A stretch of DNA of 64,000 nt, from IMG/VR virus record IMGVR_UViG_3300023202_000247, positions 62,001 through 126,000 of that record; one strand, 5' to 3'. Of this stretch, positions 4,233 to 46,209 are shown in pieces. The notes beneath the pieces were generated by a model, which searched no databases, was not told where the DNA came from, and saw only the letters and a program-made list of their open reading frames with translations. Every line of letters begins with the position of its first letter. Position 1 is the first letter of the stretch. Both the position numbers and the translations under genes were made by a program.

Positions 4233-4667
4233 ATGAAATGTAATAAAGCAGATCATCGTATGTTTCAGAATAATGACACTTGTTATAAATGTAAGCAGTT
4301 GGAAGAAAACAAGGTCATTTATTCTATTTATACATATAACTATGATCCTAAAACGGATATTAAAAAGCTTGAGATCAGCAATGGCTTTTTCTTTGATGAG
4401 GCTAAAGCTGTTGAGTTAATAGAAACGGCTGGTGAAATTGACTTGTTCGAGTATCACACCAACTATGCCGTTATCATCAGAGAATATGAGGGCGACTATA
4501 GTAAGTTAATGAGCGATGTGGTTGGCGTGTGGGCCGCTCATCAAAACTATAGTGATGACGAGGTTGTTAGTGACCATCCTTTTCTCGGTCCAGGTCCGTT
4601 CAAGGCTATGAGGCTGGATGAAAAAGAGTGGCCACAGTTTTTCAAGAATTTGATTTGGTGCAATTGA
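4233..4667 (+). CDS. hypothetical protein
   Basis: ORF track. Confidence 0.65.
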   Translation: MKCNKADHRMFQNNDTCYKCKQLEENKVIYSIYTYNYDPKTDIKKLEISNGFFFDEAKAVELIETAGEIDLFEYHTNYAVIIREYEGDYSKLMSDVVGVWAAHQNYSDDEVVSDHPFLGPGPFKAMRLDEKEWPQFFKNLIWCN

Positions 4668-5098
4668 GAATGTTGAGAGATTATCACAGCTTTGATATGT
4701 TGGTACAGTGGCTACCATTTATCGTAGGACCAATTGTAGAGTTGTTCTTTCCAAAGTACCACACTCACATTTGGACGTTTATATTCGGATGGGTTGCTGT
4801 ATATGGTGTTCGTAACTTTGTTATGAAGCCTGTTTGGAGATGGCTTAATAACAAAACCGGAGTACCACCCCATCTAACCGTTTCATATCCCAAAAAGCTA
4901 CCGGTTGGAAACATGGCTACTTGTGCTACCTGGGAAGGCAAGGACGGCGGCATTGATGAAAATGATAAGATGCTTTACGTTTCATATCATGCACGCATTT
5001 TTACATCGAACTTGACCAGTAAATCAACCGTAGGTTTGGTTATGAAGTGGCTTGATGCATTGGAAAATGGTTGCGCCAAACTATCTGAGAAGCGATGA
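4628..5098 (+). CDS. hypothetical membrane protein
   Basis: two hydrophobic helices; coupled to next gene. Confidence 0.6.
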   Translation: MATVFQEFDLVQLRMLRDYHSFDMLVQWLPFIVGPIVELFFPKYHTHIWTFIFGWVAVYGVRNFVMKPVWRWLNNKTGVPPHLTVSYPKKLPVGNMATCATWEGKDGGIDENDKMLYVSYHARIFTSNLTSKSTVGLVMKWLDALENGCAKLSEKR

Positions 5099-5910
5099 GA
5101 CCAGTAATTTTACCACGCAAAGACCTTGATTGGGAAGACGAAGCAGAAGCTGCGGCAAAGTATTTCAACATACTTTATTACCGTCCACAAGTAATCCAAG
5201 ATAACTTGGTTATTGCTCGTTTCTCAGCTGTACCATTCTACAGAGAACAAGCTCTCGAGTATGAATATGTAGGTGCGCGTATGATTAACTCGTACGCTGA
5301 GCATCTATACATTGCAGACTTGCGCGAGTGGTATGCAGACTTGATGGAGTTTACTCCGAAGACGTGGACACAGCTTCATACGATTCCCGATGAAGGACCA
5401 TTCGTTCTCAAAGGGATCACGAATAGCAAAAAGTTTCTGTGGAAGACTCATATGTTTGCGCAGAATAAACAGGAAGCTATTCAGGTTCATTCACGTTTGA
5501 CGCAAGATTCGATGATTGCGTATCAAGATATCGTCATACGTGAGTATGTGCCTTTACATACATACATGACTGGATTGCAAGGCATGCCGGTCACCAAAGA
5601 GTTTCGGTTTTTCTTTTACAAGGGAAACCTTTTGAGCGGCGGATACTATTGGTCCAGTCACATGTACGACTTGGAGGATGCTGGTATCAAGCCTGACATT
5701 GTTGAGGTTCCACTTCCTTGGTTGATGGAGATTGCGCGCATAGTTGCAAAAAAAGCGACGTTCTTCGTGTTGGACGTTGCGCAAACCGAAAGTGGTGAAT
5801 GGATTTTGATCGAGGTTAATGACGGACAGCAATCCGGTTTGTCCGAGAATGACCCCGATGTTTTGTATAGAAATCTGAAAAAGTTCTTGCAGGAAGACGG
5901 ACACGTATGA
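5095..5910 (+). CDS. ATP-grasp domain protein (R2K-like)
   Basis: FVLKG, IREYVP, EFRFF, FVLDVA, WILIEVNDGQQSG motifs. Confidence 0.85.
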   Translation: MRPVILPRKDLDWEDEAEAAAKYFNILYYRPQVIQDNLVIARFSAVPFYREQALEYEYVGARMINSYAEHLYIADLREWYADLMEFTPKTWTQLHTIPDEGPFVLKGITNSKKFLWKTHMFAQNKQEAIQVHSRLTQDSMIAYQDIVIREYVPLHTYMTGLQGMPVTKEFRFFFYKGNLLSGGYYWSSHMYDLEDAGIKPDIVEVPLPWLMEIARIVAKKATFFVLDVAQTESGEWILIEVNDGQQSGLSENDPDVLYRNLKKFLQEDGHV

Positions 5911-6443
5911 TAACCTTGAAAAGCCCACCAAAGTTTCGAGACATTCCACCATTCATTCCATTCACTGGTTACACCGTAGATGTTACTTGGCAACATTTGC
6001 AAGAGTGGCTTGATGATGAAGAGAATAAGAATCTTGAACCTGACTTTCAAAGGGGACACGTTTGGACCGATGAAAAGCGTCAAGCGTATATTGAATTCTG
6101 TCTTCGTGGGGGAAATTCTGCAAACGATATCTATTGGAATTGTGAGAACTATGGTCGAGGAGGACAAGGAGAGCTAGTCCTAGTAGACGGAAAGCAACGT
6201 CTAACATCTGTTCTCATGTTTCTACAAGATAAAATAGCTGTTTTTGGTAAGCATCGTTACAGTGACTTTGTCGATCGTTTGGGCACTGGTACTAGACTAC
6301 ATATCAATATCAACAGCTTGAAGACACGAGCAGAAATTCTTCAGTGGTATCTTGATCTCAACACTGGTGGAGTTGTTCATACCAATGAAGAGATTGAAAA
6401 AGTTCGTCGCATGTTGAAAAAGGAGTTGAGTTCCAATGCATAA
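5907..6443 (+). CDS. DUF262 / ParB-like domain protein
   Basis: PDFQRGHVW, VDGKQRLTS, LNTGG motifs. Confidence 0.88.
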   Translation: MITLKSPPKFRDIPPFIPFTGYTVDVTWQHLQEWLDDEENKNLEPDFQRGHVWTDEKRQAYIEFCLRGGNSANDIYWNCENYGRGGQGELVLVDGKQRLTSVLMFLQDKIAVFGKHRYSDFVDRLGTGTRLHININSLKTRAEILQWYLDLNTGGVVHTNEEIEKVRRMLKKELSSNA

Positions 6444-6708
6444 AGAAGTAATCAAGTTTGAAAAAGAATGTAAGCGTTTCACTGATGCCGAGAAGACTGT
6501 TGATAATGCTGGCTACAGAGAAAATATCTTTGAATTCTATGTGTACGGTAAGCTTTTGATTTGCAAAGATAAAGAGTTGAATGTGCACCTAGCTAACTTC
6601 AAAAAGGTATTGGGCGATCATGATTTTGACACTCATATGATGACGCAAATCATGAAAAAGCTTGATAAAAATGAAGCTGAGTTTTTCAAATCATTGGCTA
6701 GCAAATGA
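6436..6708 (+). CDS. hypothetical protein
   Basis: overlap-coupled ORF. Confidence 0.6.
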   Translation: MHKEVIKFEKECKRFTDAEKTVDNAGYRENIFEFYVYGKLLICKDKELNVHLANFKKVLGDHDFDTHMMTQIMKKLDKNEAEFFKSLASK

Positions 6709-7304
6709 AAATCAAACTCGTTGCAGCAACCAATGGTTATGTTGAAGATGCACAGCAATCTATCATGCTGTGGTATAACAACTATGAAGAATGTGATCTT
6801 GCAGGATCGCTAATCAGTCTGGCATCTCAGCTTGCAGACCTGTATCGCTCGGAGGTTCTGAGAGATACGCATTATGAACCAGGGCTTCCGCCATTCGGAG
6901 AGCGGCCCACAACCGCGAATAGATATTATCCCGGCGGTGATAGACTCTTGTTCGAACCATTTGATCCCAGCGAGTTTGCCGAATACATTCGCAAGCTCCC
7001 ATCACAAACCGTTAATGCGATGGTTATGGAAGACTATGGTTATTGGGATTTTGTTAGCTTTTATAGAGCCCGCAGAATTCCAATGTCCGAAACGCTACTG
7101 GTTACAGAGAACTTCGAGCGTATCATTGCTGCATCGGTTCCCGTCGATGACTCGTTTCTTCCTGAAGAACGAGAGTGTATGCTTCGGTTTGTTAAAGATA
7201 ATCAATATCAAATTGCATGTAATGAGAGTTGGAATCTAGCATCCATTTGTTACGATGAAAAACATATTCCAGTCAACACTCCAGAAAGACTCGGCTTCAA
7301 ATGA
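6705..7304 (+). CDS. hypothetical protein
   Basis: ATGA-coupled ORF. Confidence 0.65.
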   Translation: MKIKLVAATNGYVEDAQQSIMLWYNNYEECDLAGSLISLASQLADLYRSEVLRDTHYEPGLPPFGERPTTANRYYPGGDRLLFEPFDPSEFAEYIRKLPSQTVNAMVMEDYGYWDFVSFYRARRIPMSETLLVTENFERIIAASVPVDDSFLPEERECMLRFVKDNQYQIACNESWNLASICYDEKHIPVNTPERLGFK

Positions 7305-7525
7305 AAAATGAAAAGATTAAACTCGGGCTGATCAAGCTGTTTCAGAAAGTTCTTGACAACAAGACTGATGATGTGCTACCATTGTTGAATAGTGTTGCAT
7401 CCGTAAAAGATGTATTGGACTGGTCAGCTCGCACAGTTGGTTACAAAGATGTTGACGAGTATGTAAAAGAACATGGCAAAGATGGTCTGGTTGCGATGTT
7501 GGAGTACAAACTAAAGGGTGAGTGA
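7301..7525 (+). CDS. hypothetical protein
   Basis: ATGA-coupled ORF directly upstream of cas12f-like gene. Confidence 0.6.
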   Translation: MKNEKIKLGLIKLFQKVLDNKTDDVLPLLNSVASVKDVLDWSARTVGYKDVDEYVKEHGKDGLVAMLEYKLKGE

Positions 7526-9003
7526 TGTCTGAAAAGCCTGAACCCATTGAAACCAAAGAAGAGAAAAGGAAGAAGAGTCGCAAGCGTCAAAAGAAAGTTA
7601 CCGACACTTCGCGCAAGAAGGCTAAGATTAAAAACATTGCCAGAGTAATAAAGATTGAACTGGCAAAGCCAATCGATAGTGTATTTCACTCCAAATCTAC
7701 TCCTGTCAGTTGGGACGAGGTTGGTCCCGAACTACGTCGACAGCGGAGCATCATGCACCGGCTTCTTAATTCAGCTGTAACCGAATGTGAATTGGCTCAG
7801 CGCGGTAACATCGATAAGCCCATTCAAACTGTTGTGTATCATGCTGTTAAAAAAGAGTTTAACAGTTTTGTAGAGTGGACGAGCAATCATAAGAATAAAG
7901 AAATTCGCGACAGGTATGAAGGCTTCGCATTGCCTGGCGGAACGTTTGCTGCTGTTAGTGGAATTGCTTATAAGCAATGGTCTACATGGAAGAAGGATAA
8001 GACTGGCAGTTCCAGTCTCCCGTCCTTTCGCAAGGGTGCGCCCATCTTCATTCGCAAACAAGAATGCGAGCTTGCCAAGGATGATGATATTGGAATTTAT
8101 CTAAAGCTGAAGTTGTTTCCCAACGGTGCAATTCGTTTTGCAATTCGTCCCAGCCGTGGAGATCATTTCAAAACGATTCGTGAAATCGTCGAATCTGATG
8201 GTTCTTGCTGGCAAGGTGATTGTAAAATCATCTTTGATGAAAACGCAAGGCGAAAGAATGGTGGAAAGGGTAAGTGGTTTGCGTTTCTAACCTACTACAC
8301 TCGCGCTCCTAGTCCCGCGGATGCTGATATGAAAAAGGCTTTGGTGCTCAATCGTGGACACCATTGTTTTCTGTACGCAATGACAACAACTGGTAAGTCA
8401 CACATTATCATGCGCGGCAGTGATGTGCGAGCTTACCGTAAACGTGTCAGTAAGCTTCGAGGTGAGTTTAAGGGTAATTTCTATGAAGCGGGAAGCGGTT
8501 CCCGTGGTCATGGAAAGATGCGTAAGTATCGAGAGTATGCAAAGTTTGGTAACAAAGAATCTAATTTCTTGAAGACCAAAAGTCAACAAGCATGGGCTCG
8601 AGTGGAAGAGATTATGAAGCGGGAAGGCTGTGGCACTGTGATTGTTGAAGATTACAGCGGTGCAGAGACTCGGTTTTTGCAGTGGCCATTGTTCGAATTC
8701 AAAAACCACGGTAAAAATATGTGTGAACGTAATGGTTTCAACATGCAAGAAACCAAAAGGGTCAGTGCTATTGCATGTCCACGCTGTGGTAGTGACGACC
8801 ATAAGAAATATATGAATCGAAATCTCATTTTTCATTGCAATGAATGTGGTTTCGAACGCCCATATGATTTCGTATCCACTTTCAACATGGGGTTGGCCGC
8901 CGGTGCTGACATGGGTTGCTTCCGATTTACCCCGGCAGAAACTAGAACTGATAGAGAAGAAAAAGCAAAGCTCGAAGCTGAAGCCGCGGAGCTAAAGAAA
9001 TGA
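7522..9003 (+). CDS. cas12f: Cas12f1/TnpB-family RNA-guided protein, predicted nuclease-dead (RuvC-I D to N)
   Basis: Colinear with AsCas12f1 as recalled: IELAKP..WDEVGPELR, SLPSFRK, KWFAFLTY, KALVLNRG (vs IMGIDLG), GSRGHGK, EGCGTVIVED, RFLQW, CPRCG..FHCNECGF..D. Confidence 0.85.
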   Translation: MMSEKPEPIETKEEKRKKSRKRQKKVTDTSRKKAKIKNIARVIKIELAKPIDSVFHSKSTPVSWDEVGPELRRQRSIMHRLLNSAVTECELAQRGNIDKPIQTVVYHAVKKEFNSFVEWTSNHKNKEIRDRYEGFALPGGTFAAVSGIAYKQWSTWKKDKTGSSSLPSFRKGAPIFIRKQECELAKDDDIGIYLKLKLFPNGAIRFAIRPSRGDHFKTIREIVESDGSCWQGDCKIIFDENARRKNGGKGKWFAFLTYYTRAPSPADADMKKALVLNRGHHCFLYAMTTTGKSHIIMRGSDVRAYRKRVSKLRGEFKGNFYEAGSGSRGHGKMRKYREYAKFGNKESNFLKTKSQQAWARVEEIMKREGCGTVIVEDYSGAETRFLQWPLFEFKNHGKNMCERNGFNMQETKRVSAIACPRCGSDDHKKYMNRNLIFHCNECGFERPYDFVSTFNMGLAAGADMGCFRFTPAETRTDREEKAKLEAEAAELKK

Positions 9004-9557
9004 ATTGCAATCATACTTTTAAGGTAAGTAGCTATACTACAAAGCATATTACTTATCGTTGTAGTAAATGTAATGAGCGGGCTGAGCGTTCCTCTTCCAA
9101 GGAAGAGGAAAAGTACATTAGCGAAAAACAAAATAGGAGACTTAATCCTCCCAAACATTATGTTTGGCACAAGTTTGCCAAAGCGTTTCAAAATGATGAT
9201 ATGTCTTGGAAAAAAGAAAATCTCAACAAGATGCATGTTATCAGTAAATGGGCAGAAAAATATCCAGAACACATCCGAATCATTCGCTGTGATGATTCCG
9301 TAAATTCAAGTTCAGTGATCATATTCATTGAGCACAAGTCTGAGCGTTCATATATGGGTACAACGATGTTGTGCGTGCCTCAGTGTAGTCCTGATCCACC
9401 AATTAGTATGTTTCTTTACCCCAACCATGTGGAGAATATGATTGCTGCGCTTCAAGAAATTGAAGTTCAAACTAGAACGATCAAAGAGATTGAAAATGCT
9501 GATTCTATAAAGGACAGCAAAGAAGTTAATGAAATGTTGTCGTATGAAAAATCTTGA
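9000..9557 (+). CDS. hypothetical protein with N-terminal Zn-ribbon
   Basis: CxH..CSKC; ATGA-coupled to cas12f-like gene. Confidence 0.65.
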   Translation: MNCNHTFKVSSYTTKHITYRCSKCNERAERSSSKEEEKYISEKQNRRLNPPKHYVWHKFAKAFQNDDMSWKKENLNKMHVISKWAEKYPEHIRIIRCDDSVNSSSVIIFIEHKSERSYMGTTMLCVPQCSPDPPISMFLYPNHVENMIAALQEIEVQTRTIKEIENADSIKDSKEVNEMLSYEKS

Positions 9558-9825
9558 GAAACTTGAAATGTTTTATGATAGGATTAAGAAATATGATTCA
9601 AAGTCTGAATACAACTTTTCAGAAATTGTTTCAACAGCTCAGTCTTTATTAGGCATTACAGATCAAGAATTGGCTGATACGTTTAGTGTAAGTCGGTCCA
9701 CTGTATATCGCTGGGCAACCTGTAGCAGTATGCCGTGCCTAGCTGTTAGAGATTCTTTCTTAAAGTGGTTATCAATGAATATTCAACACAGGCTGAACAG
9801 CCGGTCAACTGAAAAAAGTCCTTGA
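9544..9825 (+). CDS. XRE-family helix-turn-helix protein
   Basis: LGITDQELADTFSVSRSTVYRW. Confidence 0.8.
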   Translation: MKNLEKLEMFYDRIKKYDSKSEYNFSEIVSTAQSLLGITDQELADTFSVSRSTVYRWATCSSMPCLAVRDSFLKWLSMNIQHRLNSRSTEKSP

Positions 9826-9850
9826 CATTCAACTGCTTCTGAGTTAGATT
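9822..9850 (+). promoter_or_regulatory. sigma70-like promoter for the structured RNA
   Basis: TTGACA 9822-9827, 17-nt spacer, TAGATT 9845-9850. Confidence 0.7.
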
Positions 9851-9856
9851 GGCTTT

Positions 9857-10069
9857 CGTGATGAAGCCAGTATCACACAGCCTCTCACAAGTAGGGCAAA
9901 ACATCTCGCTAACGTTCCTCGGAACGATCGTCCGTAAGGACAGCTACGATACGCCGTTGGTATCCTTCGGGAAACCTGCGGAAAACAACGGGGTGACTGC
10001 ACACCCTAAGGCGAGTGTACCGAAAGTAAGGGGCTGTGTAATGCTGGCGTCACAAAAAGTATCGTAGCT
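9857..10069 (+). ncRNA. structured RNA, candidate tracr/omega-type guide scaffold for the dCas12f
   Basis: Long stem 9858-9885 with 10029-10053 (three G-U pairs favour + strand); hairpins with GUAA and cUUCGg loops; 11-bp pseudoknot agctacgatac 9942-9952 with gtatcgtagct 10059-10069. Confidence 0.7.
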
Positions 10070-10684
10070 AGATGCTCCGTTGGTTTGCAAAGCCTCAGAG
10101 CCAGCAGTGTGACGTTACTGCTTAAAATTTTTACAAAGGGATGCTGTGCTCTTACAGACCTCATCCTAAAGTATCGTAGCACAGTATGAAGTGTCGTGCA
10201 CAAATGCAGTAAGCGGTTGCTATGATGGGTTGGTTTGTAAAGATAATATAAGTATCGTAGCAGAAAGTGCAACTAGCAGGCGTTGGTTTGCAAAGGACGC
10301 TGTGCTCTTAAAAAGTCACAGACGATCTGTGTGTAGTGAAATCGGAGAAAAATGACCGAAAAAGAACTGAAACATTATGTTCAGAACAACCTGGGGGATG
10401 GTGGTTTCATTGAAAAATCCGAAGGATACTGCCTCATAGGCGAATTCAATGGTCCAGTTCGACATGTTTACGGATTCGGTAGAACATGGGCCCAAGCATA
10501 TGAATCCGTCTTCAAAAAAAATCTAAACTGATGCTTAATGCTGGCATCACAAAAAGAGGTCACAGACAAGTATCGTAGTTAGATGGAGCCTCAGTGGTAA
10601 CGCAGAACGTCTTCATAGATCAAATACAGTGACAGCCTCGTCTCAATTTTTACAAAGGATGCTGTGCTCCTAAAAGTCACAGAC
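10059..10684 (+). CRISPR. degenerate CRISPR-like array (motifs gtatcgtagc, gttggtttgcaaag, and hairpin repeat caaaggatgctgtgctcctaaaagtcacagac)
   Basis: gtatcgtag at 10059,10171,10252,10570; gttggtttgYaaag at 10079,10229,10282; hairpin repeat at 10134-10159,10291-10323,10653-10684, stub 10559-10567; irregular spacing. Confidence 0.5.
10352..10531 (+). CDS. 59-aa hypothetical protein inside the repeat region
   Basis: RBS ggag, MTEKELKHYVQNN...KKNLN*; below ORF-track cutoff. Confidence 0.6.
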   Translation: MTEKELKHYVQNNLGDGGFIEKSEGYCLIGEFNGPVRHVYGFGRTWAQAYESVFKKNLN

Positions 10685-10695
10685 AACAATTTACA

Positions 10696-10878
10696 ATGAG
10701 TACACTTCCTAGAGTTACTTTCAATACAGAAGATGGGCTAGAAAAGCACGGTAATGTGTTGCTTCGTCAGGAGCCGAACCTAATCGTGCATGTAAAGGAT
10801 GAACCAGAAGCTATTTGGCTTGTCCCAATTTCATCCTGCGTAAAGCAACAGGAGAAAAAGAAAAAGAAGAAGGCATGA
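10696..10878 (+). CDS. hypothetical protein
   Basis: ORF track. Confidence 0.55.
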   Translation: MSTLPRVTFNTEDGLEKHGNVLLRQEPNLIVHVKDEPEAIWLVPISSCVKQQEKKKKKKA

Positions 10879-11135
10879 AATATCTGCTATTAATAATAGC
10901 AGCATCAATTGTCAGTTGTACAGCACCTACCTCGTACGCTAGTCCGAGTGTAGGTGCTTGGCATTGGTGCCAAGAAACTTGTACCGAGCGCTCCAATAAC
11001 GGTGCTTGTACGAACTTTTACGTATCAGAGTGTGAGCGCTATGCTCATACATCTGAAGATGATGCCATTCAAATGGAAGAACAGGCATGCCTTGATAAAG
11101 GATATTCTGCTATTGATTGTGAATACTCACGATGA
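10875..11135 (+). CDS. Cys-rich putative lipoprotein
   Basis: MKYLLLIIAASIVSC signal/lipobox-like. Confidence 0.55.
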   Translation: MKYLLLIIAASIVSCTAPTSYASPSVGAWHWCQETCTERSNNGACTNFYVSECERYAHTSEDDAIQMEEQACLDKGYSAIDCEYSR

Positions 11136-11764
11136 ATGATAAATATATTAAGATAAAAGATGCGCGCGAGCGTAGAATAAAAAACAACCTGTGTATCACT
11201 TGTGGTTTGATTCCACCACGAAAAGATCGACGTATGTGTGTTGATTGTTCGGACAAGCGATTGAAATATGAGGCAGAGCTTCGCTTGCGTGCCACTGAAG
11301 AAAAACGTAAGAAGCGTAATGCTGTTAACAGAAAGCTCAATAGAACTTTTATCGAGCGCGGCATATGTCCAAATTGTTACAAGCGTCCATTGGAAGAGGG
11401 TAAAAAATCTTGTTCCAAATGCCTAAAGGGTGCACGAGACAGGGCTAAATATCCTTTGCGTTTGCCAAGAGGGGGTATGTCATTGTTCATGGGCGAGTAT
11501 AAAGCTTTAACCCAAGAACAGTTTCATAATTTTTACAAGGCTGTCGAACGTAAAGGCAGCGCTGCAAACTTCGAATCATACCTATCCGAACTAGAGTCCA
11601 AAGTCTACCGTGCCCGCATCGATGGCACATCTATGGAAGCAATTGCTAAAGACATTGGATATACTAGACAAGGTGTAGCGTATATCGAAAGAAACATTGC
11701 TAAGAAGTTTGTCGGAAAAGTTGGCAAACTCAAACTCTCCGATTTGAGGAACAATGGAACTTGA
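11132..11764 (+). CDS. Zn-finger plus sigma70 region-4-like HTH protein (similar architecture to 2509..3015)
   Basis: four CxxC pairs; LSELESKVY..SMEAIAKDIGYTRQGVAYIE. Confidence 0.7.
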   Translation: MNDKYIKIKDARERRIKNNLCITCGLIPPRKDRRMCVDCSDKRLKYEAELRLRATEEKRKKRNAVNRKLNRTFIERGICPNCYKRPLEEGKKSCSKCLKGARDRAKYPLRLPRGGMSLFMGEYKALTQEQFHNFYKAVERKGSAANFESYLSELESKVYRARIDGTSMEAIAKDIGYTRQGVAYIERNIAKKFVGKVGKLKLSDLRNNGT

Positions 11765-11822
11765 TCAGTTGTAGTAATGAAATGTGTTTCCGCAGAAGAT
11801 CCTAGCTAGAAGAGGTTTAAAC

Positions 11823-12260
11823 ATGGAAAAGCTAAGATTAGAGATTGACTGTGATGATGACAAGATGTATTACAAGTGGGATACGGATGAATTGCATAAT
11901 CCATATGGTCCAGCAGTTGAATTTGTAAGTGGAACTAAAGAATGGTGGGTAAACGGAAATCGTCACCGAGAAGATGGTCCAGCAATTGAATATGCAAATG
12001 GACATAAAGAGTGGTATCTAAACGGTAAACGTCATCGGGAAGATGGTCCAGCAATTGAATATGCAAATGGATCTAGAGAATGGTATCTAAACGGTAAACG
12101 TCATCGTGAAGATGGTCCAGCTTTTGAACATGCATATGGATCTAAAGAATGGTGGGTAAACGGTGTCGAATTTACAGAGGAAGAATTCAACAGTCGTCAC
12201 TCTTGTACCAGCAAGATTGTTAAGATTGACGGAAAACGCTACAAGTTAGAAGAGATTTGA
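11823..12260 (+). CDS. HREDGPA-repeat (MORN-like beta-hairpin) protein, copy 1
   Basis: MEKLRLEID cap, 23-aa HREDGPA repeats, IDGKRYKLEE cap. Confidence 0.85.
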   Translation: MEKLRLEIDCDDDKMYYKWDTDELHNPYGPAVEFVSGTKEWWVNGNRHREDGPAIEYANGHKEWYLNGKRHREDGPAIEYANGSREWYLNGKRHREDGPAFEHAYGSKEWWVNGVEFTEEEFNSRHSCTSKIVKIDGKRYKLEEI

Positions 12261-12262
12261 AA

Positions 12263-12754
12263 ATGGAAAAGCTGCGAGTAGAAATTGACTGTGATGGTAC
12301 AAAAAAGTATTACAAGTGGGATACGTGTGAACTACATAATCCGTATGGTCCAGCAATTGAATATGAAAATGGAGATAAATCTTGGTATCTAAACGGTAAA
12401 CTTCATCGTGAAGATGGTCCAGCAATTGAATGGACAGATGGACATAAAGAGTGGTGGATAAACGGTAAAGTTCATCGTGAGGATGGTCCAGCTGTTGAAT
12501 TTGCAAATGGAGATAAATGTTGGTATCTAAACGGCAAACGTCACCGAGAAGATGGCCCAGCTGTTGAATACGCAAATGGATCTAAATTTTGGTATGTAAA
12601 CAGTAAACGTCATCGTGAAGATGGTCCAGCAATTGAATGGGCAAATGGACATAAAGAGTGGTATGTAAATGGTGTCGAATTGACAAAGAAAGAATTTCAC
12701 AATCGTCACTCTTGTAAAAGATTGTTAATATTGACGGAAAACGTTACAAGCTAG
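12263..12754 (+). CDS. HREDGPA-repeat protein, copy 2 (C-cap frameshifted)
   Basis: four repeats; C-cap DNA present but out of frame after ~12716. Confidence 0.8.
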   Translation: MEKLRVEIDCDGTKKYYKWDTCELHNPYGPAIEYENGDKSWYLNGKLHREDGPAIEWTDGHKEWWINGKVHREDGPAVEFANGDKCWYLNGKRHREDGPAVEYANGSKFWYVNSKRHREDGPAIEWANGHKEWYVNGVELTKKEFHNRHSCKRLLILTENVTS

Positions 12755-12767
12755 AAGAGGTTTAAAC

Positions 12768-13208
12768 ATGGAAAAGCTACGAGTAGAGATTGACTGTCAT
12801 GGTAACAAGATGTATTACAAGTGGGATACGGATGAACTGCATAATCCATATGGTCCAGCTGTTGAAGGTGCAGATGGAGATAAAGAATGGTATCTAAACG
12901 ATAAGCTTCACCGAGAAGATGGCCCTGCTATTGAAGGTGCAGATGGAGATAAAGAATGGTATCTAAACGATAAGCTTCACAGAGAAGATGGTCCAGCAGT
13001 TGAATATGCATATGGACATAAAGAGTGGTATGTAAACGGTAAACGTCATCGTGAGGGTGGTCCTGCTGTTGAACATGCAGATGGATATAAAGAATGGTAT
13101 GTAAATGGTACCAAACTGACAGAAGAAGAGTTCAACAGTCGTCACTCATTTTGTACCAGCAAGATTGTAGAGATTGACGGAAAACGTTACAAGCTAGAAG
13201 AAGTTTGA
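12768..13208 (+). CDS. HREDGPA-repeat protein, copy 3
   Basis: same architecture. Confidence 0.85.
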   Translation: MEKLRVEIDCHGNKMYYKWDTDELHNPYGPAVEGADGDKEWYLNDKLHREDGPAIEGADGDKEWYLNDKLHREDGPAVEYAYGHKEWYVNGKRHREGGPAVEHADGYKEWYVNGTKLTEEEFNSRHSFCTSKIVEIDGKRYKLEEV

Positions 13209-13211
13209 AAG

Positions 13212-13652
13212 ATGGAAAAGCTAAGATTAGAGATTGACTGTGATGGTACAAAAAAGTATTACAAGTGGGATACGGATGAGTATCATAATCCATATGGTCC
13301 AGCTATTGAATATGCAAATGGATATAAAGAGTGGCGGGTAAACGGTAAACGTCATCGTGAAGATGGCCCTGCTATTGAAGGTGTAAATGGAACTAAATTT
13401 TGGTATCTAAACGGTAAACGTCATCGTGAAGATGGTCCAGCAATTGAATTTGTAAATGGATCTAGAGAATGGTGGGTAAACGGTAAACGTCATCGTGAAG
13501 ATGGTCCAGCTTTTGAACATGCAGATGGATATAAAGAATGGTGGATAAATGATACCAAACTTACAGAGGCAGAGTTCAACAATCGTCACTCATCTTGTAC
13601 CGGAAAGATTGTTAAGATTGACGGAAAACGTTACAAGCTAGAAGAAGTTTGA
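13212..13652 (+). CDS. HREDGPA-repeat protein, copy 4
   Basis: same architecture. Confidence 0.85.
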   Translation: MEKLRLEIDCDGTKKYYKWDTDEYHNPYGPAIEYANGYKEWRVNGKRHREDGPAIEGVNGTKFWYLNGKRHREDGPAIEFVNGSREWWVNGKRHREDGPAFEHADGYKEWWINDTKLTEAEFNNRHSSCTGKIVKIDGKRYKLEEV

Positions 13653-13655
13653 AAG

Positions 13656-14096
13656 ATGGAAAAGCTAAGATTAGAGATTGACCATCATGGTACAAAAAAA
13701 TATTACAAGTGGGATACGAATGAACTGCATAATCCATATGGTCCAGCTGTTGAATATGCAAATGGATATAAAGCTTGGTGGATAAACGGTAAACGTCATC
13801 GTGAAGATGGCCCTGCTATTGAAAGTGTAAATGGAACTAAATTTTGGTATCTAAACAATAAGCGTCATCGTGAAGATGGTCCAGCTATTGAACATGCAGA
13901 TGGACATAAATCTTGGTATCTAAACGATAAACTTCATCGTGAAGATGGTCCAGCTTTTGAACATGCAGATGGATATAAAGAATGGTATGTAAATGGTACC
14001 AAACTGACAGAAGAAGAGTTCAACAGTCGTCACTCATCTTGTACCAGCAAGATTGTGGAGATTGACGGAAAACGTTACAAGCTAGAAGAAGTTTGA
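13656..14096 (+). CDS. HREDGPA-repeat protein, copy 5
   Basis: same architecture. Confidence 0.85.
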   Translation: MEKLRLEIDHHGTKKYYKWDTNELHNPYGPAVEYANGYKAWWINGKRHREDGPAIESVNGTKFWYLNNKRHREDGPAIEHADGHKSWYLNDKLHREDGPAFEHADGYKEWYVNGTKLTEEEFNSRHSSCTSKIVEIDGKRYKLEEV

Positions 14097-14099
14097 AAG

Positions 14100-14498
14100 A
14101 TGGAAAAGCTAAGATTAGAGATTGACTGTGATGGTACAAAAAAGTATTACAAGTGGGATACGTATGAACTGCATAATCCATATGGTCCAGCTATTGAATA
14201 TGCAGATGGAGATAAATTTTGGTATGAATTTGCAGATGGAGATAAAGCTTGGTATCTAAACGGCAAACGTCATCGTGAGGATGGCCCAGCTTTTAAATAT
14301 GCAAATGGACATAAAGAATGGTATGTAAATGGTAAACTTCATCGTGAAGATGGTCCAGCTATTGAATATGCAGATGGAGATAAAGCTTGGTGGATAAATG
14401 ATACCAAACTTACAGAGGAAGAATTCAATAGTCGTCACTCTTGTGCTGGTAAAGTTGTGGAGATTGATGGAAAACGTTACAAACTAGAAGAAGTTTGA
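14100..14498 (+). CDS. HREDGPA-repeat protein, copy 6 (internal in-frame deletion)
   Basis: KFWY-EFADG junction lacks part of one repeat. Confidence 0.85.
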   Translation: MEKLRLEIDCDGTKKYYKWDTYELHNPYGPAIEYADGDKFWYEFADGDKAWYLNGKRHREDGPAFKYANGHKEWYVNGKLHREDGPAIEYADGDKAWWINDTKLTEEEFNSRHSCAGKVVEIDGKRYKLEEV

Positions 14499-14501
14499 AA
14501 T

Positions 14502-14979
14502 ATGGAAAAGCTAAGATTAGAGATTGACTGTGATGGTACAAAAAAGTATTACAAGTGGGATACGTGTGAATTGCATAATACATATGGTCCAGCTGTTGAA
14601 TATGCAGATGGAGATAAATCTTGGTATGTAAACAATAAGCTTCACAGAGAAGATGGTCCAGCTGTTGAAGATGCAGATGGATATAAATTTTGGTATCTAA
14701 ACAGCAAGCTTCATCGTGAGGATGGTCCAGCTGTTGAAGGTGCAAATGGAGATAAAGTTTGGTATGTAAACGGCAAGCTTCATCGGGAAGATGGCCCTGC
14801 TATTGAAGATGCAGATGGAGATAAATTTTGGTCCTGCTGTTGAATTGGAAGATGGAACTAAAGAATGGTATGTAAATGGTACCAAACTGACAGAAGAAGG
14901 GTTTAACAATCGTTACTCATCTTGTACCAGCAAGATTGTAGAGATTGATGGAAAACGTTACAAGCTAGAAGAAGTTTGA
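14502..14979 (+). pseudogene. HREDGPA-repeat protein, copy 7, frameshifted
   Basis: deletion at ~14830 joins ttttgg to tcctgct, splitting it into ORFs 14502..14843 and 14791..14979. Confidence 0.8.
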
Positions 14980-15008: not shown

Positions 15009-16283
15009 ATGAGCACAGTTGTAGTAATGAAATGTGTTTCCGCAGAAGATCATCCCAAGGCTGATGCCCTGCGCCTTTATCAATTTTCTCCCGGCGATGG
15101 TCAAGAGAATGTACAAATCATTGCCAACCTGGAAAATGTATATCAGGTAGGTGATCATGCAATCATTGCCAATATTGGTTGTATTCTCAAGGAAGATAAT
15201 CTAAATGTCAAGCCTGCTAAGTTTCGTGGTATTCCTTCATATGGAATAGCAATGGGTAAGACTGATAAGCCTGTAGGTACTGATCTAACCGATGAGTATT
15301 GCATCGAGCAAAAATCGCCGTTGCCCATTCAGAAGTGGCCGAAGATTGAGAGTCTTTCCAGCGTCCGTCAATATATGGTAGAGGTTGATGAGTTTCATCC
15401 AATCGATTACCGACCAAAGATAAAGATTGATGGGGCAAACACTTCGGTACATGTCAAGGATGACACTGTCATGGCTCAAAGCCGTGTCAAGATGCTCACT
15501 GTAGATGATGACCTGTACGGTTTTGCCAAGTGGGTTGATGCGAATCGAGACTACTGGTCTGCAATTTCTGACGATTACTTAGTTGTTTTCGGAGAATGGG
15601 CAGGTGAAGGAATTCAAAAGCGCAACGCTGCTGTAGCTAGCGTTAGTAAAAAGTTTTTTGCGGTTTTTGCAATTTACGATGGTAAGGGATATATTGTAAG
15701 CCCCGAGAAAATTCGTGCCCTTTTGCCAAAGCATGAAGACATTTACGTTTTGCCATGGGCCGATGAGAAACATACATTTGATTTCACGGACCGTGACAAG
15801 TTGCGTGTAACGGCTGAGCATGTAGCAAAGCAAGTTGCAATCGTGGAAGAGTGCGACCCTTGGGTCAAGAGCACATTTGGTTTGGAAGGTACGGGCGAAG
15901 GTCTAGTTTACTACCCTTTGCTCGAAGGCGATGATTATATTGATCAGTTTGCATTCTCCAATTTCGTTTTCAAAGCCAAAGGCGAAAAGCACAAGGTAAA
16001 GAAAACGAAGAAGCCCGTGCCCATTGATCCGGAAGTTGCTGAATCCATTGCGGAATTCGTTGATACATTTGTCACGGAGAATCGTTTGGAGCAAATGGCA
16101 ACGGAGTTGGGCTGTGGTTATGATATGAAAAAGACTGGTCAGTTTATCAAGCTTGTCATAGCTGACGTTCAAAAGGAAAGCGTTGATGAATTGAAAGCTT
16201 CCAAGTTGGAATGGAAAGATGTGGTGAAACCGGTGAGTAGCGCAGCCGTATCTTGGTGGCAAAAGAAATGTAAAGAAATATAA
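15009..16283 (+). CDS. ATP-dependent RNA ligase (Rnl2-like) with N-terminal tRNA-binding OB domain
   Basis: HPKADALR..FRGIPSYG OB domain; KIDGAN, FGEWAG, FAVFAI, GEGLV, FKAK motifs; RBS gagga before ATG 15009. Confidence 0.85.
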   Translation: MSTVVVMKCVSAEDHPKADALRLYQFSPGDGQENVQIIANLENVYQVGDHAIIANIGCILKEDNLNVKPAKFRGIPSYGIAMGKTDKPVGTDLTDEYCIEQKSPLPIQKWPKIESLSSVRQYMVEVDEFHPIDYRPKIKIDGANTSVHVKDDTVMAQSRVKMLTVDDDLYGFAKWVDANRDYWSAISDDYLVVFGEWAGEGIQKRNAAVASVSKKFFAVFAIYDGKGYIVSPEKIRALLPKHEDIYVLPWADEKHTFDFTDRDKLRVTAEHVAKQVAIVEECDPWVKSTFGLEGTGEGLVYYPLLEGDDYIDQFAFSNFVFKAKGEKHKVKKTKKPVPIDPEVAESIAEFVDTFVTENRLEQMATELGCGYDMKKTGQFIKLVIADVQKESVDELKASKLEWKDVVKPVSSAAVSWWQKKCKEI

Positions 16284-16337: not shown

Positions 16338-16844
16338 ATGGAAAAGCTACGAGTAGAGATTGATTATCATGGTACCAAGAGATATTACAAATGGGATACG
16401 TGTGAACTACATAATCCGTATGGTCCAGCAATTGAATATGAAAATGGATCTAAATGTTGGTATCTAAACGGTAAATATCATCGAGAAGATGGTCCAGCTA
16501 TTGAATATGCAAATGGATCTAAATTTTGGTATGTAAACGGTAAACGTCACCGAGAAAATGGTCCAGCTATTGAATATGCAAATGGAGATAAATATTGGTA
16601 TTTAAACGATAAGTGTCATCGTGAAGATGGTCCAGCTATTGAATATTCAAATGGATATAAAGAGTGGTGGGTAAACGATAAGCGTCATCGTGAGGATGGT
16701 CCAGCTGTTGAATATGTAAATGGATCTAAAGAATGGTGGATAAATGATACCAAACTGACAGAGGAAGAGTTTAACAATCGTCACTCTTATGCTGGCAAAG
16801 TTGTGGAGATTGACGGAAAACGTTACAAGCTAGAAGAGGTTTGA
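16338..16844 (+). CDS. HREDGPA-repeat protein, copy 8
   Basis: same architecture, four repeats; followed by relic start MEKLRL* at 16846. Confidence 0.85.
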   Translation: MEKLRVEIDYHGTKRYYKWDTCELHNPYGPAIEYENGSKCWYLNGKYHREDGPAIEYANGSKFWYVNGKRHRENGPAIEYANGDKYWYLNDKCHREDGPAIEYSNGYKEWWVNDKRHREDGPAVEYVNGSKEWWINDTKLTEEEFNNRHSYAGKVVEIDGKRYKLEEV

Positions 16845-17751: not shown

Positions 17752-17887
17752 TCTTCAACAGTTTACAGTATCGTAGCACAGAACGAAATCCATAATGCAG
17801 AGAACGTGAAGCATTGCTTCGCAAAAGGAGAATTGGTCAACCATATAGGTGATATATCTATGTGGTATGACAGTACTTCCGAATACC

Positions 17888-25245: not shown

Positions 25246-25318
25246 GGGCCATTAGCTCAGCGGTTAGAGCATTCGCCTCATAAGCGACTGGTCGTAGGTT
25301 CGAATCCTACATGGCCCA
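25246..25318 (+). tRNA. tRNA-CAT, probably tRNA-Ile2 (lysidine); no encoded CCA
   Basis: cloverleaf GGGCCAT/ATGGCCC, anticodon loop CTCATAA, GGTTCGAATCC; C4:G69 and C5:G68 (TilS determinants); upstream TTGACG/TATAAT. Confidence 0.9.
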
Positions 25319-25356
25319 CAAAGATTCCAAAAATAGGAAAGTAAGGAAAGGTAAAA

Positions 25357-35274: not shown

Positions 35275-35615
35275 GCTTTGAAAAGTTTTTCACAGCATTC
35301 AAGGACTATCTGAATAGCAAAGGTACATGTGATAGTGGAGACTTTCCCATCAAACAATACAAAGAAGAGATGCGTATTGCTCTTAATGATATAATTGATG
35401 AGCGTATCAAGCTAGATAAACACAAACCACCTCGCAAAAGCAGCATGACTACCGTCATGCCTTCTCAGCGACCGATGGAAAGTGATAGCGTCGACATGCT
35501 CGACGCGCTAAACTGTGCCCCTATACCACCGGCCAACCCGTCTAACTATTCTCAGTGGATGGAAGCGTACACGAAATGGTACTATTCCAAAAGGAACAAA
35601 GTAATTAAACGATGA
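35271..35615 (+). CDS. hypothetical protein, paralogue of previous gene
   Basis: MSFE..LNCAPIPP..WMEAYTKWY. Confidence 0.7.
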   Translation: MSFEKFFTAFKDYLNSKGTCDSGDFPIKQYKEEMRIALNDIIDERIKLDKHKPPRKSSMTTVMPSQRPMESDSVDMLDALNCAPIPPANPSNYSQWMEAYTKWYYSKRNKVIKR

Positions 35616-37126
35616 AACAAATATCTCTCAGTAAGAAAGAGGAGATGCTTTGCAATTTGTTGATGGATGTTGTATTGGAGAAGGCTCCGGGTACAACGTT
35701 ACGTATTGCTGGTGGTTGGACCAGGGATAAATTGCTTGGTTCTACCACCAATGATATTGATATCTCCATTGATACCATGACGGGTGAGAAGTTTGCTCAT
35801 ATGGTTACTGAGTACATGGATGATAAAGATATCAAACATGGCAACATATCCGTCATCAAATCAAATCCAGACCAAAGCAAGCATCTAGAAACCGCAATGC
35901 TTAAAATCTATGGAATGGATATAGATTTTGTTAACCTTCGTAAAGAAACATATGCTGACTCTAGAATACCATCTATTGAGATAGGTACACCAGAAGAAGA
36001 TGCCAAACGTCGTGATTTAACTATCAATGCATTGTTTTATAATATAAACGATGACAAAGTTGAGGATTTTGTTGGCGGTCTAAAAGACTTGGACGATTAT
36101 AATCTCAGAACACCTATCGATGCTAAGCAAACTTTCTTAGATGACCCTCTGAGAATGCTTCGTATCATTCGTTTTGCTGCTAGATATAAATATGATGCAG
36201 ATGATTCCATCATCGAGGCAGCGAATAAGGATGATGTTAAGTGGGCTTTCTTGAATAAAGTAAGCAAAGAAAGGATGTGGACTGAAATTGCCGGGCAAGA
36301 GAAGCCTGATGGGTGGAAAAACGGTATCTTGAATGAAAAATATGCCATCCACGGTATCGAATTGCTCAACAAAATGGGTTTGCGAGACCTATTGTTCTGG
36401 TTTTCTCCGGAAGAAAAGAAATTATTGGGTCTAGATAAGGATTTGGTTAGTTTTGATTCGGATCAAAATAATCCTAATCATGATTTAACCATTTGGGATC
36501 ATACATGTAAAGTTATTGATAACCTAGAGTATTTTCGTCACTTATCTTCAAGAGAAGATGAGTTGGTTTTGACGTTATCAGCACTATTACATGACATAGG
36601 TAAGTGTGATTTGTGTTCCAGACAAGAAACTGATGAAGGTTATTACACTTATCATGGTCATGAAGACTCTTCTGCTAAGATGACAGAGTACTTTCTCAAC
36701 AAAATGAAAGCTCCTGTGCACATTACAAAGCGTGTTGTGCGTTTGGTTGCAGAGCACATGCGTCTTCACAACCTTCCCGATGATGCTTCTGATAAAGCAT
36801 TGCGTCGTTTCATGCGAGACCTCGAATCGGACTGGGAAATGTCCGTTGATTTGGCCTTGGCCGATGCAATGGGAAAGAATAACCCTCCGTTTGGAACGCC
36901 GGATCGCTACCTCAACTTTAAAAACAGAATGAAAAATCTCAAGGCTGAGATGGGAAACAAGACTGCGCCGAGTCGTCCAATTTCTGGCCATGATTTGATG
37001 AGTCTTGGCATTCCAGCTGGTCCACAAATGGGTAAGTTACTCAAACAACTCGATGAAGAGTTGCTAGAAAACCCAACTATGTCAAAAGATGAAGCTATCA
37101 ACTTTGTCAAAAGTTTGAATGTGTGA
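35612..37126 (+). CDS. cca: CCA-adding tRNA nucleotidyltransferase with HD domain
   Basis: AGGWTRDKLLG..DID, DFVNLRKE, RRDLTINAL, DDPLRMLR; LLHDIGK. Confidence 0.92.
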   Translation: MKQISLSKKEEMLCNLLMDVVLEKAPGTTLRIAGGWTRDKLLGSTTNDIDISIDTMTGEKFAHMVTEYMDDKDIKHGNISVIKSNPDQSKHLETAMLKIYGMDIDFVNLRKETYADSRIPSIEIGTPEEDAKRRDLTINALFYNINDDKVEDFVGGLKDLDDYNLRTPIDAKQTFLDDPLRMLRIIRFAARYKYDADDSIIEAANKDDVKWAFLNKVSKERMWTEIAGQEKPDGWKNGILNEKYAIHGIELLNKMGLRDLLFWFSPEEKKLLGLDKDLVSFDSDQNNPNHDLTIWDHTCKVIDNLEYFRHLSSREDELVLTLSALLHDIGKCDLCSRQETDEGYYTYHGHEDSSAKMTEYFLNKMKAPVHITKRVVRLVAEHMRLHNLPDDASDKALRRFMRDLESDWEMSVDLALADAMGKNNPPFGTPDRYLNFKNRMKNLKAEMGNKTAPSRPISGHDLMSLGIPAGPQMGKLLKQLDEELLENPTMSKDEAINFVKSLNV

Positions 37127-44955: not shown

Positions 44956-45046
44956 AAGATTAGAGTTTAACAGTTGTCACTCATCTTGCGCTGGCAAAGT
45001 TGTAGAGATTGACGGAAAACGTTACAAACTAGAAGAAGTTTGAAAT

Positions 45047-45487
45047 ATGGAAAAGCTAAGATTAGAGATTGACCATCATGGTAACAAGAGATACTACAAG
45101 TGGGATACGGATGAGTATCATAATCCATATGGTCCGGCAATTGAATATGCAAATGGACGTAAAGAGTGGTGGGTAAACGATAAGCGTCATCGTGAAGATG
45201 GCCCTGCTATTGAAAGTGCAAATGGATCTAAATCTTGGTATGTAAACAATAAGCTTCATCGAGAAGATGGTCCAGCTATTGAATATGCAAGTGGAGATAA
45301 AGTTTGGTATCTAAACAACAAGCTTCACCGAGAAGATGGTCCTGCTGTTGAATGGGAAGATGGAGATAAATCTTGGTGGATAAACGGTGTCGAATTTACA
45401 GAGGAAGAGTTCAACAATCATCGCTTATCTTGTACCGGAAAGATTGTAGAGATTGATGGAAAACGTTACAAGCTAGAAGAGGTTTGA
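45047..45487 (+). CDS. HREDGPA-repeat protein, copy 9
   Basis: same architecture as 11.8-16.8 kb copies. Confidence 0.85.
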   Translation: MEKLRLEIDHHGNKRYYKWDTDEYHNPYGPAIEYANGRKEWWVNDKRHREDGPAIESANGSKSWYVNNKLHREDGPAIEYASGDKVWYLNNKLHREDGPAVEWEDGDKSWWINGVEFTEEEFNNHRLSCTGKIVEIDGKRYKLEEV

Positions 45488-45490
45488 AAT

Positions 45491-46127: not shown

Positions 46128-46209
46128 GATGAAGAAACTCAAAGGATGCTGTGCTCCTAAAAGTCACAGACAAACTCAAAGGATGCTGTGCTCCTAAAAG
46201 TCACAGACA
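46128..46209 (+). repeat. two spacer-less tandem 37-nt hairpin repeats (left flank)
   Basis: aaactcaaaggatgctgtgctcctaaaagtcacagac at 46135-46171 and 46172-46208. Confidence 0.9.

Follow-up and report, generated by a model that had tools for sequence, protein, structure and literature searches.

The window analysed here is a stretch of 64,000 nucleotides (nt) that corresponds to positions 62001-126000 of the IMG/VR viral contig IMGVR_UViG_3300023202_000247; the contig is 321,461 bp long, and the window therefore belongs to a jumbo phage. It carries one gene for a small Cas12f-like protein whose RuvC-I aspartate has been replaced, followed 0.8 kb downstream by a structured RNA and a set of scrambled repeats. 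The protein is very probably an RNA-guided effector, and its sequence indicates that nuclease activity has most likely been lost. Our preferred reading, to which we give about an even chance, is that of an adaptation-less, V-F-derived RNA-guided DNA binder that does not cut, draws on the fixed guides of a decayed array and would work as a roadblock or repressor.

7522-9003, + strand: Cas12f-like effector gene, 493 amino acids from the GTG at 7522 or 492 from the ATG at 7525

The second of these starts overlaps the stop codon of the upstream gene and is the likelier one. The initial annotation, made from the sequence alone, had described an intact open reading frame (ORF) of 493 amino acids colinear with Cas12f1 and extended by a Lys/Arg-rich N-terminus. 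Both descriptions proved correct, as residues 127-458 align to active Cas12f in phmmer searches against PDB sequences, and the Lys/Arg-rich residues 1-38 are present as a low-confidence part of the AlphaFold2 model. The phmmer matches were Cas12f proteins only, with OsCas12f (9nzq, E 1.2e-18) as the best, and AsCas12f (8j12, 7wju, 8dzj) and SpCas12f (9i8y) at E values of about 1e-14 to 1e-15. Among profile collections, the PADLOC Cas12f model covered residues 39-457 (E 1.1e-32) and the Cas12u3 model matched at E 6.3e-30, while Pfam gave only a sub-threshold TNB zinc ribbon, PHROGs gave no match, and the NCBIfam guided_TnpB model scored 27.8 bits against a cut-off of 100. The AlphaFold2 model, built with 35 homologues, reached a mean predicted local distance difference test score of 84, and Foldseek placed it closest to AsCas12f (E 1.6e-24), followed by other Cas12f proteins and, more weakly, by dCas12f of Bacteroidota (9n9c, 1e-17), TnpB (1e-13 or weaker) and Cas12m (1e-10). 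Homology to Cas12f and type V-F over the WED, REC, RuvC and zinc ribbon parts is found by sequence, profile and fold alike, and on these comparisons the effector is classified as a divergent V-F1 (V-U3)-like Cas12f.

In regard to the active site, alignments with the PDB proteins set GVDMG/GIDLG of active Cas12f against VLNRG, which places Asn277 at the RuvC-I position, and TSQRC against a degraded SAIAC. At the same time, IQMEDL aligns to VIVEDY and ADYNAARN to YDFVSTFN, so that the RuvC-II Glu376 and the RuvC-III Asp449 are kept, and the zinc ribbon CPRC...CNEC (C419, C422, C439, C442) is intact. The Asp-Glu-Asp (D-E-D) triad is accordingly not intact, with Asn277 standing beside a conserved Glu376 and Asp449, exactly the combination of lost and retained residues that the initial annotation had pointed out.

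The substitution is not peculiar to this phage. An exhaustive HMMER search of 1.84 billion cluster representatives (clusters at 50% identity) returned 463 clusters with E <= 1e-3, 54 of them with E <= 1e-30. In a MAFFT alignment of the best 150 relatives, the RuvC-I column holds His in 95, Arg in 23, Asn in 15, Lys in 2 and Asp in 14, whereas RuvC-II Glu is present in 125 and RuvC-III Asp in 136. The residue that follows the substituted position is nearly always Arg, giving a family motif 'HRG'. Relatives that keep the Asp all show canonical GxDxG, TSQRC and ADYNAARN, and 13 of the 14, those long enough to be placed in a tree, form a single clade of canonical Cas12f-like proteins (support 99). 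The query and the 85%-identical protein P0002 fall inside a 45-member clade with 42 His, 2 Asn and 1 Arg (Shimodaira-Hasegawa-like approximate likelihood ratio test 99), as sisters to the His-bearing P0007 and P0008. In total, the RuvC-I Asp is absent from at least 111 of the 135 near-full-length relatives, out of the best 150, that were placed in the tree. Since the Asp-bearing sequences form a separate clade and the query is nested among His-bearing ones, the phylogeny argues that the loss of Asp is ancient and family-wide, that His is the ancestral state of the clade, and that Asn277 is a secondary change from His, for which one base change is needed. The initial idea of a private Asp-to-Asn change therefore had to be abandoned in favour of an old loss followed by His-to-Asn. 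Moreover, a position that tolerates His, Arg, Asn and Lys does not behave as a catalytic residue. No structure in PDB and no family in Pfam or PHROG corresponds to the branch, and a profile word search for the family returned unrelated TnpBs of Phocaeicola.

Three phages carry the effector ORF intact, and selection on it is strongly purifying. The ratio of non-synonymous to synonymous substitution rates (dN/dS) is 0.083 at dS 0.92 against the gene of P0002, and the copy in a near-identical sister phage (L001) differs by 26 synonymous and 2 non-synonymous changes (dN/dS 0.02). A neutrally decaying copy among homologues that keep the Asp, the outcome named in advance as evidence against a functional protein, is not what was seen, as the close homologues lack the Asp too and dN/dS lies at 0.02-0.08.

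The second component of the presumed system is an RNA locus on the same strand, in which the following elements can be recognized.

9822-9850, + strand: sigma-70-like promoter TTGACA-17-TAGATT, about 7 nt ahead of the structured RNA
9857-10052, + strand: scaffold RNA resembling a trans-activating CRISPR RNA (tracr-like), inside whose closing stem lie several hairpins and GGCGAG, the core conserved in the family (about 10010-10015)
9943-9952, + strand: anti-repeat GCTACGATAC, left unpaired by the predicted fold; the repeat units contain its exact complement, GTATCGTAGC
10057-10092, + strand: unit U1, 36 nt, fused to the scaffold, AAGTATCGTAGC...GTTGGTTTGCAAAG, in the length class of the 36-37-nt repeats of relatives
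10093-10132, + strand: likeliest guide S1 of the fused single-guide RNA, CCTCAGAGCCAGCAGTGTGA..., its register inferred from type V architecture

The promoter and the structured RNA had been proposed at the outset, and both are present. The RNA 9855-10135 folds at -103.7 kcal/mol, better than all 200 shuffles (z-score -4.7), with a 27-nt closing stem between 9862-9888 and 10026-10052. Promoter-like sites are no commoner here (11) than expected in shuffled sequence (11.8), and the promoter is therefore backed by its position and not by statistics; it is retained in L001, and the sequence directly upstream of it is retained in L015, the contig that carries P0002. The complement of the anti-repeat, GTATCGTAGC, recurs at 10059 (U1), 10171 (U2), 10252 (U3) and 17768 (U5), and a G-U-compatible variant, GTATCGTAGT, occurs at 10570 (U4) and at L010:5079 (U6), L010 being contig positions 52.7-59.8 kb just upstream of the window. 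The anti-repeat is thus complementary to sequence in six units, a feature typical of tracrRNAs. The GTTGGTTTGCAAAG end of U1 is followed by CCTCAGAGCC... and an intrinsic terminator (stem 10103-10122 and a T-run), into which S1 extends, and the whole resembles a natural single-guide RNA about 275 nt in length. Rfam gave nothing for 9750-10750, even at E <= 1.

Structured RNAs closed by long stems also adjoin the effector gene in the relatives L002 (z-score -8.0), L003 (-7.5) and L014 (-8.3), and homologous scaffold RNAs lie beside effector relatives in L002, L003, L014, L018, L019 and L008. Clear tracr-like RNAs are those of L018 and L019, where a GCUCCA loop is complementary to the repeat 3′ end (GGAGC) and an anti-repeat to the repeat middle, and where arrays of 36-37-nt repeats follow downstream, with 4 repeats in L018 and at least 26 in L019. 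The array of L008 has 4 repeats, and all three arrays are regular or semi-regular. In the 197-kb virus Rctr197k (GenBank KX853510), a 4-repeat array had already been annotated as CRISPR by the depositors. Across five scaffolds (the window, L003, L014, L002 and L008) an RCGCGAG core could be aligned; they were too divergent for a consensus fold, and nothing beyond this core aligned. The effector family is genuinely CRISPR-associated, and the phage of the window carries a decayed version. As an additional observation, in the L019 array (L019:5785-8260, relative P0015, at least 26 repeats) the 3′ halves of the repeats (AAGGATTGGAGGTCGGAGC) are conserved while the 5′ halves and the spacing vary, and the gene caller had put a false reverse ORF onto it.

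Downstream of U1 follow further repeat-like units, together with a 31-nt motif, M (AAAGGATGCTGTGCTCCTAAAAGTCACAGAC), which is found after U1, U3 and U4 and at several more distant sites.

10135-10159, + strand: variant copy of M (AAAGGGATGCTGTGCTCTTACAGAC)
10169-10295, + strand: units U2 (10169-10242, 74 nt) and U3 (10250-10295, 46 nt), each running from AAGTATCGTAGC to GTTGGTTTG[T/C]AAAG, with a 7-nt gap
10292-10323, + strand: copy of M fused to the end of U3; L001 has an extra 25 nt between U3 and a perfect M
10558-10684, + strand: unit U4, in the order GGTCACAGAC; AAGTATCGTAGT; a 31-nt constant part (10580-10610); a 34-nt variable segment (10611-10644); AATTTTTAC; M (10654-10684)
17766-17830, + strand: orphan repeat-like unit U5 (CAGTATCGTAGCACAG...), intergenic
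46141-46208, + strand: tandem M pair with a 37-nt period (copies at 46141 and 46178), upstream of the gene 46243-46704
46721-46788, + strand: second tandem M pair (copies at 46721 and 46758)
54991-55068, + strand: variant M (54991-55021) and perfect M (55038-55068), upstream of an RtcB-like gene

The repeat-like units of the window are 36, 74 and 46 nt long and irregularly spaced. Of the initial description, the repeated motifs stand, occurring far above chance, and what it called a repeat array is a patchwork of irregular units in place of a regular CRISPR array. U4 sits after a 59-amino-acid ORF, repeats the final 20 nt of the scaffold and lacks the GTTGGTTTGCAAAG end. It has a twin, U6, 14.7 kb upstream in the same phage (contig about 57.8 kb), and the 34-nt segment of U4 (10611-10644) is the reverse complement, at 32 of 34 positions, of L010:5120-5153 in U6; a 27-mer common to both segments occurs nowhere else in IMG/VR. 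These segments in opposite orientation could represent guide-target pairing, an antisense RNA pair or an inversion scar.

Two further copies of M lie in L010. Its exact 28-mer occurs 7 times in all of IMG/VR, every time in the contig of the window, and all copies of M are located upstream of genes, three of them inside the RNA locus; JGI metagenome scans with M and with the effector protein were empty. The sequence CAAAGGA is common to M and the L018 and L019 repeats, and M is also similar to the scaffold closing stem on its 3′ strand; for these reasons M may be repeat-derived. Two other explanations for M were considered. It does not form a strong RNA hairpin (z-scores -1.2 and -0.1), and it is unlikely to be a general phage promoter, with only 7 exact copies in 321 kb. 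The variant at 54991-55021 carries compensatory changes in a weak hairpin. Windows 46128-46211 and 46708-46791 are direct repeats of about 85 nt, each with two copies of M, that flank a 153-amino-acid gene (46243-46704), which looks like a mobile or recombining cassette. In T4-type phages, promoter-stem-loop cassettes mediate gene shuffling, and the direct repeats around this gene are similar to them. The indels of 25 nt and 12 nt that distinguish the window from L001 would be accounted for by recombination at sequences like M, as would the inverted segment shared by U4 and U6.

Between the effector and the RNA locus lie two further genes, both reported in the initial annotation and both confirmed as ORFs, the second one also by Pfam.

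9000-9557, + strand: ORF of 185 amino acids, overlapping the effector stop codon, with an N-terminal Cys/His zinc-ribbon-like motif
9529-9825, + strand: helix-turn-helix (HTH) ORF of CI/XRE type, 98 amino acids, its stop codon within the -35 hexamer of the RNA promoter

The HTH protein matches Pfam Phage_CI_repr (E 2.9e-5, 24.7 bits against a cut-off of 22), while the 185-amino-acid protein has no match in Pfam, PHROG, NCBIfam, PADLOC or PDB. Comparison with the sister phages shows that neither gene is a constant companion. L001 is about 99% identical downstream and keeps the larger ORF, but the core of the HTH ORF (window 9574-9765) is deleted and the promoter nevertheless retained. In L015 the HTH gene is absent and the larger ORF is reduced to 16 codons, and about 70 nt past the effector gene comes the sequence found just before the RNA promoter in the window. 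Constant across the window, L001 and L015 are only the effector and the RNA locus, which are inherited together. The recurring gene-HTH-RNA synteny that had been anticipated is consequently not borne out, and both genes are dispensable, one or both being missing in two sister phages. The 185-amino-acid ORF was also considered as a conserved partner and rejected, as it is lost in L015 and unrelated to the ORFs that occupy the corresponding position in L002, L003 and L016; its sequence comparisons mark it as a variable accessory gene rather than a fixed component. The effector of distant relatives is often followed by an ORF of about 185-215 amino acids, joined in L016 by an XRE HTH gene, and these ORFs belong to at least three unrelated families.

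A search for sigma domains in the ORFs of 4233-12257 found none, the best hit being Sigma70_ECF at E 0.12 on the HTH ORF, and it holds for the nearby ORFs that no sigma-E, Tn7 or adaptation gene accompanies the effector. The broader statement that the window is free of cas1, cas2 and TnpA stands for the ORFs that were checked, namely those within about 5 kb and the largest ones.

Two observations concern the neighbourhood of relatives. In L001, the region in place of window 5906-7504 encodes (L001:145-729) a 194-amino-acid HD-domain protein that ends 4 nt before the effector start and matches Pfam HD (E 5.5e-11) and Cas3_HD (32 bits, over the cut-off); an HD nuclease coupled directly to an Asp-less Cas12f is suggestive, and none was seen beside other relatives. 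In L014, a 603-amino-acid protein with a weak AcrVA2-like Pfam match (L014:976-2787) is encoded two genes upstream of the family member P0008.

Potential targets were sought with the guides. The 20-mer of S1 occurs only at its own position in IMG/VR, a scan that includes the whole 321-kb contig, and not at all in 185,579 GTDB genomes; its 18-mer is found in 4 unrelated metagenome-assembled genomes in GTDB, at or below chance, and no match of at least 11 nt exists in 73 kb of phage sequence. Guides taken right after GTATCGTAG gave only matches of 13-14 nt with marginal significance, spacers of Rctr197k, L019 and L018 had no matches in GenBank phages or IMG/VR, and beside M no guide match of at least 11 nt was found except for the copies of M themselves. 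The initial suggestion that the effector silences or activates host genes has no support from these guide searches yet.

In regard to the mechanism, the preferred reading takes the effector as a functional member of an old, largely virus-borne Cas12f (V-F, V-U3-like) branch, in which the RuvC-I residue changed from Asp to His and, in this phage, on to Asn, and Arg became conserved at the position after it. Its partner would be a natural single-guide RNA of about 275 nt, transcribed from a host-type promoter in the locus 0.8 kb downstream of the effector and composed of the tracr-like scaffold, the 36-nt repeat paired with the internal anti-repeat, a short guide and the terminator. Units U2 to U6 could supply extra guides, or they could be recombination debris. 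The complex would then bind its DNA target and leave it uncut, since the metal-binding Asp is gone across the clade, and would, like Cas12m or TldR, serve as a roadblock or repressor. What is left of the array in this phage is a small number of fixed units, and this suggests a fixed target, whether in the phage, the host or a competitor, rather than adaptive immunity. RNA binding, the guide register, the loss of cleavage and repression are all conditional parts of this proposal.

Several observations weigh against it. About 85-90% of the family still have the RuvC-II Glu and the RuvC-III Asp, and the large array of L019 looks like immunity, both of which are compatible with some retained catalysis. 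At least three guide registers fit the sequence, the presumed guide has no target in the 321-kb contig, IMG/VR or the GTDB genomes, U4 and U6 are not significantly structured on their own, and the relative L016 has no recognizable RNA within 5 kb.

Part of this evidence would suit a protein that is still a nuclease with a remodelled site (His/Asn-Arg, Glu376 and Asp449), used as a mini-CRISPR weapon against phages, plasmids or host DNA, or as a nickase or single-strand cutter. In addition to the retained Glu and Asp, the conservation of 'HRG' itself and the true arrays of relatives, one with at least 26 repeats, agree with such an activity. To our knowledge, however, mutation of the RuvC-I Asp abolishes cleavage in every Cas12 and TnpB tested, and a residue that varies among His, Arg, Asn and Lys within one clade, next to a TSQRC motif degraded to SAIAC, is not what would be expected of a catalytic centre. 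We therefore regard continued cleavage as unlikely, while noting that a survey of TnpB and Cas12 proteins argues that conserved alterations of the catalytic site often keep activity (PMC10691335). An RNA-guided activator similar to dCas12f-sigmaE, which would recruit RNA polymerase to the cassettes of motif M via a phage factor (the HTH ORF, or a 210-amino-acid zinc-ribbon/HTH ORF at 11132-11764), could account for HTH proteins near the effector, for the restriction of M to this phage in 7 exact copies, always upstream of genes and three times in the RNA locus, and for its likeness to the CAAAGGA of the L018/L019 repeats and to the closing-stem 3′ strand. We assign it a low probability, as no sigma factor was detected (best ECF E 0.12), the C-terminus that dCas12f lost for sigma-E docking is intact, the HTH gene is deleted in sister phages, no guide match of at least 11 nt lies beside M apart from its own copies, and direct repeats of M resembling T4-type promoter-stem-loop cassettes explain M without any Cas12f.

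An activity of the protein confined to RNA or to its own guide is likewise improbable, whether in RNA processing or sequestering, or as an anti-CRISPR decoy for host CRISPR RNAs and tracrRNAs, with no DNA binding. The Glu and Asp, kept together with a basic residue in the RuvC pocket, could in principle support metal-independent RNA chemistry, an AcrVA2-like gene lies near the relative in L014, and the two variable segments, in U4 and U6, complement each other at the RNA level; the full WED-REC-RuvC-zinc-ribbon architecture for DNA binding is kept, though, relatives carry spacer-bearing arrays, and we know of no precedent for such a role in V-F. Finally, the annotation of relatives as 'transposase' in the source databases and the scrambled repeat region might be taken as signs of a decaying TnpB/Cas12f pseudogene or a selfish IS200/IS605 remnant without function for the phage. 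An ORF intact in three phages at dN/dS 0.02-0.08, present in one copy in 321 kb, far below the NCBIfam TnpB cut-off (27.8 against 100) and with no transposase seen in the neighbourhood, makes this barely credible.

It is also conceivable, if quite unlikely, that the phage regulates itself, with the Asp-less ribonucleoprotein and the guides of the scrambled units binding beside M and switching the genes behind M on or off in the course of infection. The complementary segments of U4 and U6, which would be among these guides, lie directly upstream of motif-M cassettes. If this were true, a cleavage-free, CRISPR-derived effector would be a timing regulator of the virus's own transcription, and the His/Arg/Asn RuvC pocket would stand for a new non-cutting role across more than 100 clusters.

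The genomic setting of the locus is that of a large phage to which no GenBank phage is close, as a DNA search of GenBank phages found no relative of the locus, and the phage ligase protein as a query found no close GenBank phage. Nearly all genes of the window lie on the + strand, and the larger ORFs encode a helicase, an RNA ligase, a tRNA nucleotidyltransferase, an NAD-dependent DNA ligase and RtcB. Two groups of features stand out.

15009-16283, 25246-25319, 35612-37126, 50557-52416 and 55147-57549: RNA/DNA repair gene set
11784-14843, 16338-16844 and 44962-45931: runs of MORN-like paralogues

The repair set comprises an RNA ligase, tRNA-Met, a CCA-adding tRNA nucleotidyltransferase, an NAD-dependent DNA ligase and an 800-amino-acid RtcB with a PhoH-like N-terminal part, and is the type of kit that phages deploy against host defences that cleave tRNA. 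The paralogues are tandem genes of about 146 amino acids in long runs, with MORN-like repeats (YxNGxxHREDGPA) and a DNA identity of about 75-87% among copies. No more than 2.5 kb upstream of the effector, window 5095-6443 holds two successive genes of the defence or counter-defence type, the first for a protein of the ATP-grasp R2K family (Pfam R2K_3, E 6e-21), the second for one resembling GmrSD_N/DUF262 (E 9e-12). Just upstream of the window, L010 (genes at L010:1954-3872 and 5325-7058) holds an ATP-dependent DNA ligase, a Ku-like protein and a spore-photoproduct-lyase-like radical SAM protein, all assigned by sequence inspection, as well as an excisionase-type HTH protein (NCBIfam 'excise', E 1e-11) with two copies of motif M ahead of it.

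Among known systems, Cas12f1 of type V-F1 (formerly V-U3; AsCas12f 8j12, 7wju, 8dzj) is the closest by sequence, profile and fold, and it shares the small size, the TNB zinc ribbon, the long tracr-like scaffold, the repeat:anti-repeat pairing and the guide 3′ of the repeat. The effector differs in the replaced RuvC-I Asp (Asn, and His in the clade), the degraded TSQRC, the added basic N-terminal tail, the lack of a regular array in this jumbo phage and the lack of adaptation genes seen nearby. With Cas12m (V-M) and TldR it probably shares the principle, that is, RNA-guided binding that leaves DNA uncut and blocks transcription or replication, and TldR is also phage-encoded with a fixed guide. 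The TldR guide is encoded at the 3′ end of the gene and targets fliC or oppF promoters. Here the RNA lies 0.8 kb downstream behind its own promoter and there are no fliC or oppF neighbours, so membership in TldR was rejected, as was membership in Cas12m, for which Foldseek gave 1e-10 against 1e-24 for Cas12f and PADLOC no match. A mobile TnpB of IS200/IS605 was rejected on the same guided_TnpB score (27.8 against 100 bits), the single copy and the absence of a transposase seen nearby.

The dCas12f-sigmaE systems are similar in being Cas12f-derived with an inactive nuclease, presumably so here, in having natural single-guide or omega-RNA-like units instead of a regular array, and in the HTH genes often found near them. 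Those of Bacteroidota have lost RuvC-III and the zinc finger, have an operonic rpoE and are chromosomal (PMC13472631; PDB 9n9c). The effector was not assigned to them, as it keeps the zinc ribbon and Asp449, has no sigma factor, is phage-borne and gives a weaker fold match (1e-17 against 1e-24). The mini type V systems of phages (Cas12j/CasPhi, Cas12r of Thermus Lalka phages, 'Cas12 hacker') resemble it in compactness, in mini-arrays, in their presence in some huge phages and in the absence of adaptation modules, but these nucleases, Cas12j/CasPhi included, have an intact D-E-D triad, cut DNA and show no close sequence relation. Cas12 hacker and Cas12r both have the intact triad and cut DNA, and identity with either was rejected on that triad. 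The TnpB/Cas12 survey mentions 'large branches ... with altered catalytic sites' in Cas12f, and the passages of it drawn on here do not describe a branch with RuvC-I His/Arg/Asn (PMC10691335). Our literature search found no paper describing an Asp-less Cas12f-like branch.

Dead Cas12 regulators are established as a concept, and each nuclease-inactive descendant of TnpB and Cas12 has brought to light another biological use of guide RNAs: Cas12k serves to guide transposition, Cas12m to silence plasmids, TldR to remodel flagella and dCas12f-sigmaE to start transcription. The locus presented here points to a further sizeable nuclease-altered branch of TnpB/Cas12, which looks viral in the contexts seen, keeps the rest of the Cas12f architecture and often keeps real CRISPR arrays. 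If its members bind without cutting, they would be natural, compact (about 450-500 amino acids) effectors of the CRISPR interference type, which phages could use against hosts, against rivals or on themselves; if they still cut, they would do so by a new RuvC chemistry.

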